DNA of 64,000 nucleotides from Epithemia pelagica (taxonomy: Eukaryota; Protista; Bacillariophyta). The notes below the pieces were generated by a model that did not search any database, had not been told where the DNA came from, and saw nothing but the letters and a program-made list of their open reading frames with translations. This document shows positions 4,986 through 64,000 of the stretch, in pieces. A program made the position numbers and the translations under genes. The DNA lies in NCBI GenBank assembly GCA_946965045.2, contig OX337230.1, positions 4,030,001-4,094,000 on the forward strand. Reading direction: 5' to 3'. The number at the start of each line of letters is the position of its first letter. Within the stretch, counting starts at the first letter, position 1.

Positions 4986-6290
4986 AGGATGACGACTCTT
5001 GCTTGCATGCCGGCGGCAGGTTTCATGATACGCCGAGGACCGAGCCGAACCGAAACGGAATCTCCACACGTGGGATCCCTCGATTTGTGGTGATATATAT
5101 GCAATCCATATACTAGCTGCACGATTCCTGCACAGAAATGAGGCATTCCTGATATACCTGTGTTGTTTGTTTCTTGTTCTAGCCATTCAGTTCTTTGGTC
5201 TCCCGATCTTCTTCTTTACCCCTAGTGTTTATTATCTTCTTCTACGAAAAAGTGGTCTCCTATCATCATCCTTTTGTCGTTTCTTTTCTTGCCTTGTGGT
5301 GGAGGGTGTTGCCGTGGAATCGCACTGGGAGTTTTGTACGGTGCATCGACTTTCCAACCGCGAACCGCGACCCATGTCTTGTGGAAGAAGTTCGCCTTTC
5401 TGTTCTCAAAGTACACTACAAAAGTTTGTCCAGCTTCCGTCGTCCGCCGTCCGACATGCCTATTGTGTCGTGTTTTGTCGCCATGAGTGATGTCGTATCC
5501 AGTACCATGGGCACCTTGGCTATGGCCACCCAACAAGTCATTTTGAGCTTTTTTTTAGCACTACACCCCTGGTCGATGCTCTCGGATTGACGGCCCAATC
5601 TTGTGTTCCGCCCCTCTTGATGGAAAACGACGAAAAGAACGAATTGTCGTGGTGCCCACGGCCATGTTGCGACTCAAACAACTCCCAGTCATCCAATTGA
5701 CATCGGTCTGGCAAGTCTTTTTCGTCTATCAACTCGTGCGATGTACCACCTGGGTCGGTCGGTCCCTCCTCTTGCAACGACGCACGAGCGCGAAGCACGC
5801 CCATCACAACCATGAGAGAGAAGAGGAAAGGTCGTTTGATGGATCGACACGACGACGACGACGACGACGACTACTGCTTGCATGACAGCGGTAGGACTCA
5901 TGACACGACGAGAGCAGAGCCGGACCAACCGAACATAGCACCCCCCCCCCCCCCCCCCCAAACGGAATCTCCTGGTTTGTGAGGATATGTTTGCGCTGAG
6001 TTTGCTACATATGCAATCAATATACTAGCTGCATGATTCCTGCACAGAAGAGAGGCATTCATGAGGTACATTTGTTGTGTCTGTTTGTTTCTTGTTCTAG
6101 CCATGCAGTGCTTGGGAAAACGACTACCATGGTCTCGAGATCATGTTCGTTACCCCCAGCGTTTGCCATCTTCTGCTTCTACGAAAAAGTGTTTTCCTCT
6201 CATCCTTGTCGTTTCTCTGCGGTTCTTTGCTTGCCTTGTCGGAGGATCTGTTTCCGTGGAATGGCACTGGGAGTTTGTAAGGGAGGAATA
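4730..6290. repeat. Diverged tandem duplication, period about 0.9 kb (MATE 3' end plus downstream spacer)
   Basis: The ~5040-5340 and ~5960-6290 segments align (atatgcaatc.atatactagctgca.gattcctgcacagaa...gtttgtttcttgttctagccat). Both antisense ORFs start MARTRNKQ (5186 and 6104). Confidence 0.7.
5425..5830 (+). pseudogene. Second degenerate MATE 3' fragment with internal deletion
   Basis: Matches the MSHVVSSTMGTLAM...LGLTAQS region, then jumps directly to VPTAMLRLKQLP...VRCTTWVGRSLLLQRRT. Boundaries approximate. Confidence 0.75.
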
Positions 6291-56881: not shown

Positions 56882-58024
56882 ATGAGCATGACACTGAAAG
56901 AACAAGCATGGCAGTCGGGTCTTGTCCTACCGGACGAAACAGCGCAATGGAATGAAACCAATTGGCCTCCTCTCGAGGGAAGATGGCGAATCGAACATGC
57001 TTCGGTCGTACTGAACCATCCCGATCAGGACAACGATACCAACAACAAGGGGCAGACGGTTGTCGTGTTGGGAGGACGTCAACGAGGCCGACGCTCTGTC
57101 AATTCCGTTCTTGTATTAAATTTAACAGATCCAAATAAGCAGTGGCGAGAAGGACTGCCTATGAATAAGAGTCGTGAAGGACATGCCGCTGTTGTGTGCA
57201 ACGGAGGGGTCTACGTGATGGGAGGATTCAATGGAGGATCTTTGGATTGCATGGAACGAATTGATTGCAATGATTTGCTACTGCAATCATCTATTACAAC
57301 AAGCAGTACGCACGAGAGTTATTGGACAAAATTGAAATGTCGATTATCAACGGGACGATATAGATGTTGTGCTGTTGCGGTTCACAATCGATATATTGTG
57401 GTAATGGGTGGACGGGCCAGGGGGGAAAGCTTGTCGTCGGTGGATATTCTTGATACCAGTGACCACACTGTCATGAAGGCACCATCCATGACTGCTCCAC
57501 GAGTATCTTGTTCCAGTGCGGTCGTTGGCCACCGCATCTTTGTCGTTGGAGGCAATAATTTCAATCACGGCATTCTTGACTCGGTTGAGTATTTTAACTT
57601 TGCAGTGCCAAGTGAGAACCAGGAGACAAAGGTGGAAACTGCTGCTGCTACAGTGACTTTTTCCTCGTCCTCTTATTGGACGACTCACTCTGATCTGGTG
57701 CTTTCGGAGCCAGAAATGCGTTGTACAGTGGTTGCCGTGGGATCTTGTCTGGTGGTGGCGGGAAACCATCGAACCATGGAACTCTTGGATACACACCGCA
57801 ACCACGTGTGTAATCTCCCACCACTCGAAAATCGCCGTACAGGCTACAGTATGGTGACTGTTGCCAATCAAGTTGCCATTATTGGTGGATATGAGAATTC
57901 TACCTGTTTGACACTGCCCCTCATGGACAAGAATTCGTGGTGCTTTCAACGACTCTGTGAGCAGCATATCCAAACGGATGTACTCATTCGTGAGAAGAAG
58001 GATTGGGACAATCCTGGCAATTAA
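56882..58024 (+). CDS. Stand-alone Kelch-repeat protein, 380 aa
   Basis: Paralog with the same MSMTLKEQAWQSG start and six GG-type blades. Confidence 0.9.
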   Translation: MSMTLKEQAWQSGLVLPDETAQWNETNWPPLEGRWRIEHASVVLNHPDQDNDTNNKGQTVVVLGGRQRGRRSVNSVLVLNLTDPNKQWREGLPMNKSREGHAAVVCNGGVYVMGGFNGGSLDCMERIDCNDLLLQSSITTSSTHESYWTKLKCRLSTGRYRCCAVAVHNRYIVVMGGRARGESLSSVDILDTSDHTVMKAPSMTAPRVSCSSAVVGHRIFVVGGNNFNHGILDSVEYFNFAVPSENQETKVETAAATVTFSSSSYWTTHSDLVLSEPEMRCTVVAVGSCLVVAGNHRTMELLDTHRNHVCNLPPLENRRTGYSMVTVANQVAIIGGYENSTCLTLPLMDKNSWCFQRLCEQHIQTDVLIREKKDWDNPGN

Positions 58025-58644
58025 TGGATTTGTGCATGGTGCCTTCCAACCGGGCACACTCCGAATTGCTCTCCAACTGTCGGAACAATGAAATGTTGTG
58101 TTGTGCAATGAAATGATTCGAGTACAATGAGATGCTCGAATCATCGTGGAATCATTTCATGGCACAACACAAAGTTGACATGGACTGTAATGCAACGACA
58201 CACAACCGTGACGGCATCCACTTTGGTTGTGTCGACCCAGCGAGATTCCATCATGGTGATTCCATCATGGTACACAGTATGTGAGTTGGGATGGTGTGGT
58301 GGTGCATTGTAAATGACGTGACAAATAGGATACACAACATAACTAAGGAGTTAACATGATCTTCCTAAAAGCTCGTGACGTCAACATGACAAGTATTGGA
58401 AAGTAGAACTTCACTGATATTGCTTCCTCAGCTTTTGACGTGGTATGCAACCTGTTGCACCGTAAGTGCCATCCTCTTCGTTGTACCACCATGTCAGACA
58501 TGTGTATTGGTCCTGACTTGGTATTGCTTACGAATTGAGTTCGAGGTTGTGCAGCATGTTGCATTCCCATTGGGGATACCCACTCCTTCTCATCACGAAT
58601 GAGAGCATGCATCCGTTTGGAGGTTGCTCACAGAGTTGTAAATC

Positions 58645-58856
58645 TACTTTAATAGCCAGGGTGGACGAGGAGGAGCTAGGGTGTGAGGAGTGGCTTAACT
58701 CCGAGAAGGGCAATAGCGACGAGGAGTGGACTGCCCCTGTGAGATCCGCGTAAGCGGATCGAGGGGGCAGTCCACGACGAGAAGCTATTGCCCGACGAGG
58801 AGTTTAGCCACGAGGAGCGCCCTGCGACGAGGAGTCCCCCCGGGGCTATTAAAGTA
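58645..58856 (+). other. 212-nt rod-like hairpin with GTAA tetraloop and purine-rich symmetric internal loops (structured RNA or ssDNA candidate)
   Basis: Stems tactttaatagcc/ggctattaaagta, tggcttaactcc/ggagtttagcca, gggcaatagc/gctattgccc, tggactgcccct/agggggcagtcca and gatccgc-GTAA-gcggatc. Loops are built from CGAG(G/A)AG on both arms. Confidence 0.8.
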
Positions 58857-59263
58857 TGTTAGCTTCCTTTGTCACGAGGAGTCCTGCCCGCGCACCCTAG
58901 GTAATTTTCGTTCTTCCTAAGTGATCGTTTCTCTCAATTGATACTTAGTAATCGCTGGCCTATTTAGCTTTCTACATTCACGCCGGCACAATGTTAGTTA
59001 GGTATCTTGCTTGCGTGCTTGCGCACCTCATCCGATTGCTCGCGTTGCTCAAATAGCATCATACTGTCGTGCTTGCGCAACAAATCCGATGGCTCGCGTA
59101 AGTCAAATAGGTACATAGGACAAGTCGTGTTGTTTACATAGGCGTGACACACTAATACATAAGTAATTTCTATTTATTACTTACATCCCCCACCCCCCCC
59201 AACTGACAATCCCACGATTCTCTCGTACAGACGACACATTTTGTGCAACGACAACACAACAAC

Positions 59264-62200
59264 ATGATGAGAAAAGGAAGACAACCGACCATGGTGACTC
59301 CTCCTCCTTCTGGAGGAGTTGGTAGTGCTTCCAAACAGGTTGATTGTGAAGTCGTAGACCTTTGCACTCCTCCTCAAGTAATAGATCTTTGTAGTTCGTC
59401 TTCCTCGTCTAGTTGCTCATCAGACTCTTCGGGGGAAACTCTTGTCTTTATCACAAAGGACAATGCAACAGACGAATGGGATGGTAATCTCTTTCGCCGT
59501 TTGGAGATCTACTACGACTGCACTGGGTCATCCGACGACTTCAGCGCCTGTAGTTCCGACCCTTGGATCATGGAAATCCTACAGAGACGGTAAGTTTTCG
59601 CCGCGTTTCCCACCATTGTCGTGTGTTTTCCTTCCAGACGTCTTCCCAAAATTTCAAACCACCTGCCGTGCGCGCGCGCATGGTCGAGTCGCTGTTATGT
59701 TTCCTACTGATTCCTACGTACAGCCTACGTGTCCGCACATTGTTGCAAGTGTCACCGTCTTCACTTTCCTCACCCTCATTTTTCATTGTGCACTGTTTTT
59801 TCATCGTCGTTTCGCAGCCCGACCATGGCGACTCGACAATCTTGCCGCCAAATGGAGCGGGCAGCTGCGAGAAACAACGACGACACCACCAACTCAACCA
59901 ATAACGTCAACCCGTACCGCAATTCCAGGCGCCCACCCGACAACCGTGCGAATCGTCCACCTTTGACAGAAACAAATATTCCTCCTTCCCGAAATCGTCG
60001 TCAACAACAACAGGACGATAACCAAGCACCTGAGCAATCAAAGTAAGTACGAGTGTGTTCTACTGTTTTCTATCGTTATCTGAGTTGTAACTAACCACCG
60101 TGTTTCCTTATACCCCTTCAGCATTGTTGCGAGGCCTGATCCTTCTTCCCGTCGTCGTCAACTGGAACAACTTGACCTTCCCAACCATGCGAACGACGCC
60201 CTTCTGAATGCTGCCACGGTTGTTGAATCATGCAAAGTAGATACCAAGTTGGTCTCCCAAGCATTGGTGAAGCGGATGTATTTGACATGGGATACCGAAA
60301 CAGGCACCATGCGGATTGGTGAGGCTTCATTCAACCCGCCCACCATGGACTCGTCCTGTGCACGATCGTTGGCTGCCTGGAGCCAGTATTGTCGCCTCTC
60401 TCCCACCATCTACGGGAACAGTACCTTCACCATCCGAGACCTTACCGGATGCAAGGCTTCCTACGATAAGGAAAAGTCGGCATCGGTCAACAAGTTTCTC
60501 GAATGCTTGCAAAAGCATCACGAGATGCACTTCCTTTTGGAGATTCTTGAAGACATCGACGAGTTGTCTGGTGCACAAACACCAACCCCACTTCTTTTCC
60601 TAGCACTTCGAGGAGTCAAAACTCCATCCAAGTTGACATTGTTGAATAGCGCCGTAATGGTTTTCTTGGTGAACCACCGAATGCGTGGATTCAACCCGGA
60701 GACAGACGACGTGGAAGATCCCAAGTATTTCTTCCAACCCAACACAACAATGAAGATGCTGAACCATCTCTTTGCTCTTCTACGAACACATGGCATCGTC
60801 ATCGCCCAAAGCGATCTTCGGAACGGGCATGGCAACTACCATGCCTACCTTGCCGACATTTGGAACAAGGCAGCCCTCGTCCGTCCCGAATTCGGCCGCC
60901 TCCCGCAACGTGCACCCACGGCATTCGACGATGAAGAAAAAATGCGGACGTGCGAGCCAGAGCTTCGGCCGTTCGAACCCGGCCAATATGCGACGGCCTT
61001 GAGCATGGGAGTGTACAAATCGTCACGAGATTTTGGCCTTCGGGGACCAGAAGTAAGTTGTTGTTGTTGTGTTTGTTGACTGTTGTCGTTGTTGCTGTTG
61101 TCTAACAGTTTGGTTGTTGCATGTTGTTGTCTCCAGATAAGATTATTTAAAGTTTCGGATCTTATCTTTATTGCACGTCTAGACAAATCATACGGAATGT
61201 TGGCTGGGCTTCCCGCGATTATTCTGAAAGAATCTGTGCTTGAGAAATCGTCGCATCTCGCGACGAACAATCTCGCCTTCGATCGAGTCGCGAACGACAC
61301 CCGAGACTCGACCCATATGGTAATCGAAAACCCTGACGACAAATTCTCGACGTACAAGATCCTGACGCACCTCATGAAGGTGGGTCACCCGCCAGGGTGG
61401 CAAGGTCTGTTGTTTCTGGAGCAGGTACCCGCCAAGCACATGGCGGCCCGAAAGGATGGTGCGAAGCACCTCGGTTGGACGGAGTTAGTCCCTGAAACTT
61501 CGCAGACCGATGCGGATGGATCGGGCTTCAAGTGTGCGGGTAGATTGGGCTCAAACTGGCCGAATAGGAATGCCCGTCAACTTGCCATTCGTTGCAAGTT
61601 TGACAACGCCGAGAAAGTAACGTTTCGGACCGGACGACGAACTGGCATCTCAAAAGTTGCCAACTGTGGAGTACCCCAAAAAGCCTCCGATTCCTTCGCC
61701 CGTCATAAGTCATCTTCAGTCAACGTCTTGTACCAAGACTTGACAGCGGAGAACCACCAACGGACCATAACGGCAAATTGGTACCGGCCACCCGAAAAGA
61801 ACGACGAGGAATCCGACAGCAACAAAGAAAACGTGAAGAAAGGTACGTACAGCGGTCATGACATGATCGTTACTACTATTTACTCTCTCACTGTATTGTT
61901 TTCTTGTGATTCAGACGACAAAAAGAAGAAGAAGAACAAGAAGAAGAAGAAAGAGTCGTCTTCCCCCTCATCGTCATCGTCGTCGTCGTCTACAGACATC
62001 GATACATTTCTCCAAAAGGCTAAGAAGAAGATTCTTCGTCGTAAGGCATTGGAGAAGCTGAAGGCTTCGAAGGAGGATGATTCCTCAATCGAAGATGAGA
62101 ATTCGTTGGCTCGCATCTATCGTCTCTTGGACGACAAGCCATCCAAGTCGTCCAAGTCCAAGTCGAATGGTACGTTGATTGTTGTGTTTGTGTTTCATAA

Positions 62201-63307
62201 CTTTTTATCGTTGCATCTTCTCACTTTCTCATGTTCTTTTTATCAGTCTCGGAATCCAAGAAGAAACGCAAGAAGAAGAAGAAGAAGACGAGTAGGAAGT
62301 CAATCGCATACTCTTCGTCCTCGTCGTCATCGTTGTCTGGTTGCATCGAACTTCTTTCTCATCATCGCAAGAAGAAAAAGATGACTCCCCCCAACACCAT
62401 CACTGGTACGTTGATTGTGTGTGTTTTTTGTTGATTGTTGGTTTGTTGTTCTCATGTGATGTTTTCCCTTTCTTTCATTGTTGTATTCTCAGTTCCACCA
62501 CAACCGTCGTCTCTTGTTCCGCAGCTTTCCCCCTCTCAATCCACGCAACCTCCACCACCAACAGCAACTGTGAAACCGCCGCCACCAACAGCAACTCTGA
62601 AACCGCCGCCACCACCATCCTCAACAACAGACCATCTTGCACCAGCTCAAACCAACGGAGCTTTGCAACCAGGTCCACCACCAACAACAACCACCATCGT
62701 CGAGGCGACTGTGCAACCTGCACCAACAACAACCACAACAACCGCCATCGTCGAGGCGACTGTGCAACCAGCACCAACAACAACCACAACAACCGCCATC
62801 GTCGAGGCGACTGCTCCAATTGCGCAACCACCACCAGTTCCACCGCCACCCATTTCCGCTACGACCCCCGCCATGCCACCACCAACAACAACAACAGCAC
62901 CTACCGTGCCAGCACCAGCTCCTCCGCCAACGTCGACGGAACACCAACCATACCACCACCAACCATACCACCACCAAGAGTTTCGCACTGGTTCCGGCGG
63001 CCACAACGACGGTGGTCGCGACCGGTCGGTTGATTGTCGTGTGGAGGAGCACCATCGTGTTGCTTACCATCGCAACAACTGGTACCCCCCTCCTCCACGG
63101 TCGGATACACCACCACCATACCATCATCACCATTCCTCACGAGGATACAATCATCACCGCCCATACACGCCATCGCCACCGCCGTATTACCATCACCACC
63201 ACCGTGGCAGTGGATACACCCCTCCACCTCCCCCTCCACCTCGTCACCATCATCGCGGTTCACATCATCATCATGGAAGTAGCCACGGATATGGCTACAA
63301 CTACTGA
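59264..63307 (+). CDS. Tyrosine recombinase, 7 predicted exons, ~1138 aa
   Basis: Exons 59264-59589, 59818-60042, 60122-61052, 61137-61842, 61915-62169, 62247-62405 and 62493-63307. All introns are GT-AG with matching phases, total 3417 nt, open. Motifs: FGLRGPE|IRLFKVSDL (box I Arg), FRTGRRTGIS (box II Arg), FARHKSSSVNVLY (His and Tyr). Confidence 0.8.
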
Positions 63308-63780
63308 AATACCGTAGTCTTCGGTACGTTTGCTGTTGTTATTGCATTCTTGGTTGATTGTTGTATCGTTGTCTTACCATTCTATCACTCTTTTTGACAG
63401 ATTGATATCGCTTTTGCTTTTTTGCATGTCTTTTGCAAGGTGGCCTCTAGCTTGATGTCTCGATAGGTACGTTGAATTTCCCGAACCGCCTACCGCTCCA
63501 CTTTACGCACCACTTTCTCACACGATCTTGATTTTTGCTATTTTGTCTTGGCATGAAATTTCGTGGTGCATTTCGCTTTGCTACTGAATTTTCCGTGTCG
63601 TGTGTACGCTTTGTGTCGTGTGTTTGTTTGTTGCGCCCTGCCTCGTGATTCTTGTTTCCATGTCTGTGTTTCCGTTGCTCTATCTACTTGATTCGTGTTG
63701 TTCTCGCCATTTCCGTTGGTGCACCTCTTGTTCGCTTTTTCCTGTTAATGTGTTTGTTCTCTCGTTGTTTTCCCTACGGA

Positions 63781-63832
63781 TTTCCTGGGTGTACTACTTT
63801 TCCTGGGTGTGCTACTTTCCTGGGTGTGCTAC
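63781..63832. repeat. Three copies of a 17-18 bp unit near the right end of the Crypton-like element
   Basis: tttcctgggtgt(a/g)ctac x3. Confidence 0.85.
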
Positions 63833-64000
63833 TTTTTCGTTTGGGCTATTCTAATTTTTCTACACTAAAATAAAAATCAAAGTACAGTAATTTTTCGGGC
63901 TTATGTAGAGTGGGGAGTAGGTGGGGGAGGGGTAGGACGACGAGTGAGAAAGGTAGACGAAAACACCACGTATTCTTGTCCATGAGTGGGAATGACGCAC

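Follow-up and report, generated by a model that had tools for sequence, protein, structure and literature searches.

The stretch analysed here, 64,000 nt of the forward strand of the diatom Epithemia pelagica (contig OX337230.1, positions 4,030,001 to 4,094,000; hereafter the window), carries close to its right-hand end a 5318-bp element on the plus strand that interrupts a Kelch paralog and whose only predicted gene encodes a tyrosine recombinase. All coordinates are positions in the window unless a contig or an L-label is given. We interpret the region as one copy of a Crypton-type DNA transposon, with the tyrosine recombinase as its sole gene and belonging to a lineage found so far in diatoms, and put the probability of this reading at roughly 85%. 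A preliminary description of the window had proposed a Crypton-like element at this position.

The element and its seven-exon gene

The open reading frame (ORF) listing for the plus strand between 57000 and 64000 contains fragments only, as the preliminary description had noted. Joining these fragments at six GT-AG introns of 72-228 nt yields seven exons of 3417 nt in total, or 1138 codons, with a sole stop at the last codon, which reproduces exactly the phase-compatible joining and the protein of ~1138 aa proposed there. The CTAAC branch points reported for two of the introns were located in introns 2 and 3, at 31 and 35 nt before the acceptor, respectively. The features of the element and its gene are as follows.

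58638-63955, plus strand: whole element, 5318 bp; the boundary may slide by one base (a shared G), and similarity to the 8 long and ~40 short copies ends exactly here
59264-59589, plus strand: exon 1, beginning with ATG; Ser/Asp-rich; 93% identity to the sister subfamily, gap-free
59818-60042, plus strand: exon 2; Arg/Asn/Pro/Gln-rich; one gap of 6 nt relative to the sister subfamily
60122-61052, plus strand: exon 3; core-binding-type DNA-binding domain, with box I at its 3' end (Arg 61041-61043, Glu 61050-61052)
61137-61842, plus strand: exon 4; catalytic domain, with Lys 61245-61247, Arg at the first-His site 61626-61628, Arg II 61635-61637, His 61704-61706 and Tyr 61731-61733
61915-62169, plus strand: exon 5; Lys/Ser-rich; two gaps (6 and 6 nt) relative to the sister subfamily
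62247-62405, plus strand: exon 6; Lys/Ser-rich; gaps relative to the sister subfamily all multiples of 3
62493-63307, plus strand: exon 7; Pro/Thr/His/Tyr-rich low-complexity tail; stop codon TGA
63308-63955, plus strand: 3' non-coding region, of which the last ~130 nt are common to the short derivatives (query positions 5184-5318)

No RNA run contains the stretch, so the gene model was tested by comparison with diverged copies. Projected onto the sister copies L002-L006, which are 18% diverged, the seven-exon map gives open frames of 1151-1156 codons, and GT and AG are retained wherever the alignment is clean. Differences between the 58638-63955 copy and L003 amount to 16.7%, 9.6% and 34.5% at codon positions 1, 2 and 3, respectively, and gaps in exons 1-6 are multiples of three throughout; intron gaps include ones of 1, 2, 10, 17 and 22 nt. 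The codon-position bias and the in-frame gaps thus point to selection on the protein, and as far as these comparisons go the seven-exon gene is intact and under purifying selection. The exon 3/4 join is spanned by a transcriptome-derived protein of Entomoneis paludosa (P0015, 1027 aa) with no residue extra or missing: it aligns with both the end of exon 3 (...YRSKE against ...LRGPE) and the start of exon 4 (MLTLVRSKL against IRLFKVSDL). The position of intron 3 also seems to be conserved across families that are only ~38% identical, since ORF-style protein calls of other families in public databases, P0009 (340 aa; its sequence matches the L044 copy, G000:C2:5493558-5494235) and P0148, read through an intron after box I (R-G-x-E).

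The C-terminal region has the Lys/Ser-, Pro/Thr- and His/Tyr/Pro-rich character given in the preliminary description: exons 5-6 are 26-27% Lys and 24-25% Ser, and exon 7 is 24% Pro, 15% Thr and 10% His. Four diatom relatives (P0005, P0015, P0044 and P0047) have tails of similar composition to that of exon 7, and the disordered Pro/His/Tyr-rich tail is therefore a trait of the lineage.

Recombinase fold and active site

Exons were searched and folded singly, the joined frame being counted for length and stops only. The top structural matches of both modelled domains, the core-binding-type domain of exon 3 and the catalytic domain of exon 4, are recombinases, and they include QRICH1 and Ndc10, both of which are host proteins derived from Cryptons (PMC3212892). 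Each Z score is middling alone; the two domains match the same proteins in the right order, and the language-model neighbours are Phage_integrase and DUF3504 clusters (0.96). Because two adjacent domains match the same proteins in order, and with these neighbours, we take the two-domain tyrosine recombinase fold predicted by the models as established. Structure prediction thereby bears out, for both domains, the tyrosine recombinase identity assigned earlier, with no match in Pfam.

Sequence searches, by comparison, hardly recognise this protein. Pfam searches with all ORFs and all seven exon pieces returned nothing relevant, with no match to a reverse transcriptase, RNase H, methyltransferase or DDE transposase in the 5.3-kb element. 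Exon 4 had no phmmer match among PDB sequences, and Foldseek against PDB gave nothing at an E-value of 0.001 or better, with QRICH1 and the Tn1549 integrase among its weak rows. Whole-genome scans with the DUF3504 (six-frame) and Phage_integrase models made no contact with the family or the locus. With a word-based protein search, no more than 4 relatives of exon 4 and 2 of exon 3 came to light; an exhaustive profile search was needed to recover 137 protein clusters, all of them unnamed or 'hypothetical', and those with a taxon are from diatoms, Entomoneis and Cylindrotheca. Standard domain libraries thus miss a diatom transposon lineage represented by 137 unnamed clusters, which matters for the annotation of algal genomes. 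A 36-sequence profile searched against PDB gave weak matches, to XerA at an E-value of 0.15 and to the Tn1549 integrase at one of about 1. Box II, His and Tyr are in register with both in the profile alignment, and with XerA the conserved Tyr, Arg I, Lys, Arg II and His all line up.

One further locus in the genome, G000:C17:2111311-2112574, is a distant relative of both domains (E 4.5e-13 with the exon 3 profile and 4.3e-5 with the exon 4 profile). Its box II differs (LRGQLRHY), it is the best weak genome match of the DUF3504 model, and the locus may represent either a second lineage of recombinases or a gene that has been domesticated.

Tyrosine recombinases and unusual repeats are found too in DIRS/Ngaro retrotransposons, which are characterised by a reverse transcriptase and RNase H together with split or inverted long repeats, and the exon 3 domain has a structural match to ALOG, a domain traced to the DNA-binding domains of DIRS-type recombinases, so that the element could be the recombinase part of such a retrotransposon. 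We consider this very improbable: the 5.3 kb yields no Pfam match to a reverse transcriptase, RNase H or methyltransferase, all eight other long copies in the genome have the same single-gene layout, and short derivatives retain the DNA ends only. All genomic copies still have the introns, as would not be expected had they passed through a spliced RNA.

The active-site set conserved in the lineage is Arg, Glu, Lys, Arg (for the first His), Arg, His and Tyr. In the motif FRTGRR, the Arg at 61626-61628 stands opposite the first His of HxxR and the Arg at 61635-61637 opposite the conserved Arg in the profile alignment with XerA; the preliminary description had read the box II His position correctly as R. 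Three residues of the canonical R-H-R-Y tetrad are therefore present and the first His is replaced by Arg; the tetrad is a hallmark of the enzyme family, whereas the definition of the transposon does not include it. Every intact relative examined has Arg at the first-His site, over a range of 22-85% identity, and R-[ST]-x-R-R is retained in most relatives, down to about 25% identity. The Arg motif is also present in 10 of 12 paralogous exon-4 copies sampled from the genome (38-61% identical), the exceptions being one decayed and one distant copy. One exon-4 copy, L047, is 39% identical, has the RTGRR motif and belongs to the same recombinase lineage. Several of the families with the Arg motif have near-identical young copies. 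Because the Arg is kept across paralogous families, several of them with young copies, it is a selected trait of a mobile lineage and not a lesion.

Insertion site, copies and element ends

The other copies are similar to the element from exactly 58638 (GTAAATCTAC...) through 63955 (...AAAGGTA), and the ends of the element are GTAAATC...AAAGGTA. An intact Kelch paralog lies at 56882-58024; the right flank of the element aligns with it up to position 1066 and the left flank from position 1068. The joined flanks (...CACAGAGTT/GACGAAAAC..., with the slash here and below marking a junction) occur uninterrupted at 116 places in the genome at ≤3 mismatches, and a reversed control gave 0. Since the joined flanks match uninterrupted Kelch paralogs, the insertion is of exactly 5318 bp, with neither duplication nor loss. 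The definition of both junctions by a split Kelch paralog, as first proposed, is upheld by blastn of the two flanks and by the uninterrupted sites. The features at the junctions are listed here.

58579-58637, minus strand: C-terminal remainder of the split Kelch paralog (blastn, intact paralog positions 1068-1126)
58635-58638, plus strand: left junction GTT/G; target-derived GTN, then the shared G
63953-63964, plus strand: right junction GTA/G, six variable bases and AC (63963-63964), the AC lying in the target
63956-64000, continuing beyond the window, minus strand: upstream part of the split Kelch paralog (blastn, 85% identity over 790 nt), frameshifted

The upstream part of the interrupted Kelch paralog has a frameshift near L001 7076-7116 and ORFs in two frames. 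A fragment of a copia-type polyprotein (its RNase H end; L001 7648-8292, window-equivalent ~64785-65429, minus strand) truncates the 5' part of the same paralog. The element is thus inserted into an already multiplied and now decayed Kelch paralog and, given the frameshift and the copia truncation, no working gene was necessarily lost. The Kelch family itself is very large: among the 116 sites that match the 31-mer spanning the insertion point are a series on contig 11 spaced exactly 8202 bp (e.g. C11:1422249-1463289) and dense clusters on contigs 8, 9 and 13.

Contigs from two of three public runs join 58637 to 63956/63957 and are indistinguishable from Kelch paralogs. We rejected them as evidence of an empty allele; the joined flank sequence is so abundant, being shared by over 100 Kelch paralogs, including one that has the T variant too, that these contigs cannot be assigned to the locus.

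The target was defined from 29 independent 5' junctions and 24 independent 3' junctions of long and short copies. At the 5' junctions, G is present at -3 in 29/29, T at -2 in 28/29, any base at -1, and G at +1 in 29/29; flanks of the 3' junctions have G at +1 in 23/24 and A at +8 and C at +9 in 22/24 each. AC is also present in the right flank of seven of eight further copies. These counts give a target of GTN/G-N6-AC and joined element ends of GTA/G. Comparing both ends with the genome has thus provided exact termini (58638 and 63955) as well as a target preference, and the earlier statement that only GTA is shared is corrected to a four-base GTNG microhomology, seen at the junctions of ~30 copies, together with AC 8-9 bases downstream. 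By analogy, the GTN/G-N6-AC spacing would resemble that of tyrosine recombinase exchange regions, which are 6-8 bp long. Crossover at a simple 3-bp GTA was rejected because the left flank always has its own GT before the GTA of the element.

Resolution of a heteroduplex in a 7-bp overlap was considered as well; it predicts that the first 7 nt are target-derived, and only L065 fits loosely, which is too little to conclude from. L065 (G000:C11:3389343-3390565, minus strand) is a short copy that starts with GAGGGAG and not GTAAATC and has no GTN in its left flank; its 3' end and G-N6-AC flank are normal. Such a copy could have arisen by a different resolution of a 7-bp exchange region, or simply by mutation.

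The eight other long copies and the 58638-63955 copy fall into three subfamilies about 18% apart. The 58638-63955 copy is alone in its subfamily and has subfamily-private variants at its 3' end (e.g. GAGAAAGGTA), and a second subfamily comprises six copies with mutual identities of 97-99.6%. Some 40 short derivatives, 711-1014 bp in length, retain the first ~340 and last ~130 nt. Head-to-tail tandems, with a long copy followed by a short one and the junction AAAGGTA/GTAAATC, are present in L003, L005 and L006, and would be the product expected from insertion of a circle into the end of a resident copy. Judging by the near-identical sister copies with intact frames, the short derivatives and the tandems, the family is recently mobile in this genome.

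Two further observations concern the arrangement of copies and the distribution of their similarity. Two short derivatives, L016 and L023 (G000:C3:2334214-2336356), lie tail-to-tail in opposite orientation, ~10 bp apart. The first ~1.18 kb of the element (58638-59817, including intron 1) is 92-98% identical between subfamilies (compared with L003 and the merged L008/L010), and the rest of the gene is mostly 67-84% identical, with intron 3 as a second conserved exception. This mosaic suggests either recombination or conversion between subfamilies, or a strong constraint in cis reaching well beyond the ~340 nt.

The 58638-63955 copy itself is an old singleton of its subfamily and looks coding-competent. 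The suggestion in the preliminary description that it may still be mobile is not supported for this copy, which shows no sign of recent movement, the young copies belonging to a sister subfamily ~18% diverged; mobility is possible, and what speaks for it is intactness and past selection. It is rather unlikely, in our view, that the copy is a dead relic, intact by chance or recent descent, with an inert Arg-for-His enzyme and with mobility supplied by another enzyme. Its divergence by 18% from all other copies, the missing hallmark His, the decay of the host Kelch copy (suggesting some age) and the fact that neither RNA evidence nor an empty allele was found would fit such a relic. The 1138-codon frame and all twelve splice sites are nevertheless intact, the codon-position bias and in-frame gaps reflect selection on the protein, and Pfam scans identify no other transposase in the element. 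Moreover, the Arg is kept across families only 38-61% identical that include near-identical young copies, so enzymes with the Arg motif evidently move DNA.

Both ends of the element contribute to a structure that involves the following segments, none of them assigned to a strand.

58645-58856: subterminal rod palindrome, 212 nt, of inverted repeats, beginning 8 nt inside the 5' end
58864-58897: inner partner of the 3' terminus, which extends the palindrome once the ends are joined
63923-63955: 3' terminal segment, complementary to 58864-58897

The palindrome has a DNA fold of -64.3 kcal/mol (z = -10.2; none of 200 shuffles as good) and the short derivatives have it too. Joining the ends in silico makes 63923-63955 pair with 58864-58897 (-81.4 kcal/mol across 360 nt). 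Likewise, at the naturally occurring head-to-tail junction L003:6791-7120, the final ~50 nt of one element pair with sequence immediately past the hairpin of the next (z = -8.9). According to these fold predictions, the presumed circle junction is inside a ~290-nt palindrome that the joined ends complete. The earlier statement that there are no terminal inverted repeats therefore holds for the extreme termini but not for the last ~33 nt, which are complementary to 58864-58897 beyond the hairpin.

We propose that the recombinase would excise the element as a circle, whose joined ends (...AAAGGTA/GTAAATC...) would then lie within the ~290-nt palindrome. The circle junction GTA/G may recombine with a genomic GTN/G by conservative strand exchange, which would leave GTN/G on the left and GTA/G on the right, and the distal limit of an exchange region of 7-8 bp may be where the AC lies, 8-9 bases downstream.

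Relationship to known tyrosine recombinase systems

A 2026 paper applies the name 'Crypton' to every eukaryotic DNA transposon that has a tyrosine recombinase, a group that is not monophyletic, and attributes the short repeats of Cryptons to target microhomology (PMC13465315). The element is a Crypton because this definition covers any such transposon. Its gene product is a tyrosine recombinase that has both the catalytic fold and the nucleophilic Tyr, and Pfam scans show neither a reverse transcriptase nor a DDE transposase; the element has no terminal inverted repeats at its extreme ends and no target-site duplication, and shares short bases with its target. Several points weigh against our overall reading. 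No RNA run was found for Epithemia pelagica, so the splice junctions are predictions; no circle, empty allele or identical second copy of the 58638-63955 element was found. Sequence-only searches are weak or blank (none in Pfam, E 0.15 for the PDB profile, none at E 0.001 in Foldseek), and activity is predicted for a recombinase that has Arg at the first-His site. Finally, the distance from the junction is one base greater for the TAC of the element than for the AC of the target, so that the proposed exchange geometry fits inexactly.

The place of the element among the Cryptons is less secure than its assignment to them. The preliminary description took CryptonS as carriers of a GCR1-type domain and regarded the element as atypical in lacking one; that view is refuted, since CryptonS encode no GCR1_C and have a conserved C-terminal region of their own, GCR1_C being a feature of CryptonF (Kojima and Jurka 2011, PMC3212892). 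TATGG was correctly given there as the CryptonS terminus, and the ends of the element indeed lack it. The proposal of a distinct tyrosine recombinase lineage holds insofar as the catalytic motifs differ from those of published CryptonS and Pfam is blind to the family, the separation from CryptonS being by motifs and termini.

It is unlikely, although by no means negligible, that the element is instead an ordinary CryptonS, akin to CryptonS-1_PTri, whose motifs have diverged. Its host is a stramenopile, CryptonS likewise lack GCR1_C, and a stretch R-R-x-G...A-N after box II is common to both. The only published diatom Crypton also has 7-bp terminal repeats, CTGTAAG, that contain GTAAG, and the 5' end of the family is GTAA(A/G)TC. 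The motifs point the other way: CryptonS have H-S-x-R-R-G and G-W...Y (in P. tricornutum, HSAKRS); in supplement 4 of PMC3212892 the His and the later Trp are present in all CryptonS sequences, whereas Arg and His stand at those sites throughout the element lineage. TATGG is absent from the termini, as are the 5-6-bp terminal direct repeats of CryptonS, and no sequence search linked the two groups, Repbase sequences lying outside the searches.

More tentatively, diatoms may have a separate, superfamily-level lineage of tyrosine recombinase transposons, with an active enzyme carrying Arg for the first His, a pocket nearer to that of type IB topoisomerases, and a recombination site that is placed in the ~290-nt palindrome only in the excised, joined-end form; we think this possible but improbable. 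If true, it suggests a hairpin or cruciform DNA substrate, and the GTNG-N6-AC rule would be new for any Crypton. A literature search that did not extend to Repbase returned no description of the diatom lineage, the Arg motif, the palindrome or the GTNG-N6-AC rule.

Cryptons are the least understood class of eukaryotic DNA transposons, with ends that are usually hard to define, and to our knowledge no Crypton recombinase has been studied biochemically. The family described here is unusually favourable material: ~40 copies fix its ends exactly, the target rule covers 12 bp, natural tandem junctions resemble that of the presumed circle, the minimal cis sequences can be read from the short derivatives, and the enzyme lineage, on comparative grounds, is evidently active despite the absent hallmark His. 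Two questions thereby become testable, namely how Cryptons choose and cut their targets, and whether the first His is dispensable in a recombinase.

Among the systems compared, Cre, XerA/XerD and the integron integrases are 9-21% identical to the element protein, which differs in its Arg for the first His and in its large eukaryotic-type disordered extensions; they are fixed-site recombinases, whereas that of the element is a transposon recombinase with loose target choice. Type IB topoisomerases have a basic residue at the equivalent of the first-His site; they relax DNA without recombination and have no core-binding domain, and their structural matches are much weaker than those of the recombinases. 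CryptonF have GCR1_C after the recombinase, and the element has none there, exons 5-7 being of low complexity and without a Pfam match. CryptonA carry DUF3504 (PF12012), which was not detected in exon or six-frame genome scans, the likeness to QRICH1 being structural only. CryptonA and the DUF3504 proteins (QRICH1, ZMYM; Glomhopper, PMC13465315) are found in animals and fungi, in contrast to the diatom host of the element, and CryptonA, like CryptonS, keep the first His (HSxRA; PMC3212892, supplement 4). A further comparison is with CryptonS, which share with the element a stramenopile host, a single tyrosine recombinase gene, the absence of GCR1_C and of terminal inverted repeats, short bases shared at both junctions as target microhomology, and non-autonomous derivatives. 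The element lineage differs in having, when the motifs are compared by eye, R-x-x-R-R and R-H...Y where CryptonS have HSxRRG and Trp; in its GTN/G junctions in place of TATGG (CTGTAAG in P. tricornutum); in its size of 5.3 kb and seven exons, compared with 2.5-4.7 kb; and in its long disordered N- and C-terminal regions and the ~290-nt palindrome spanning the joined ends.

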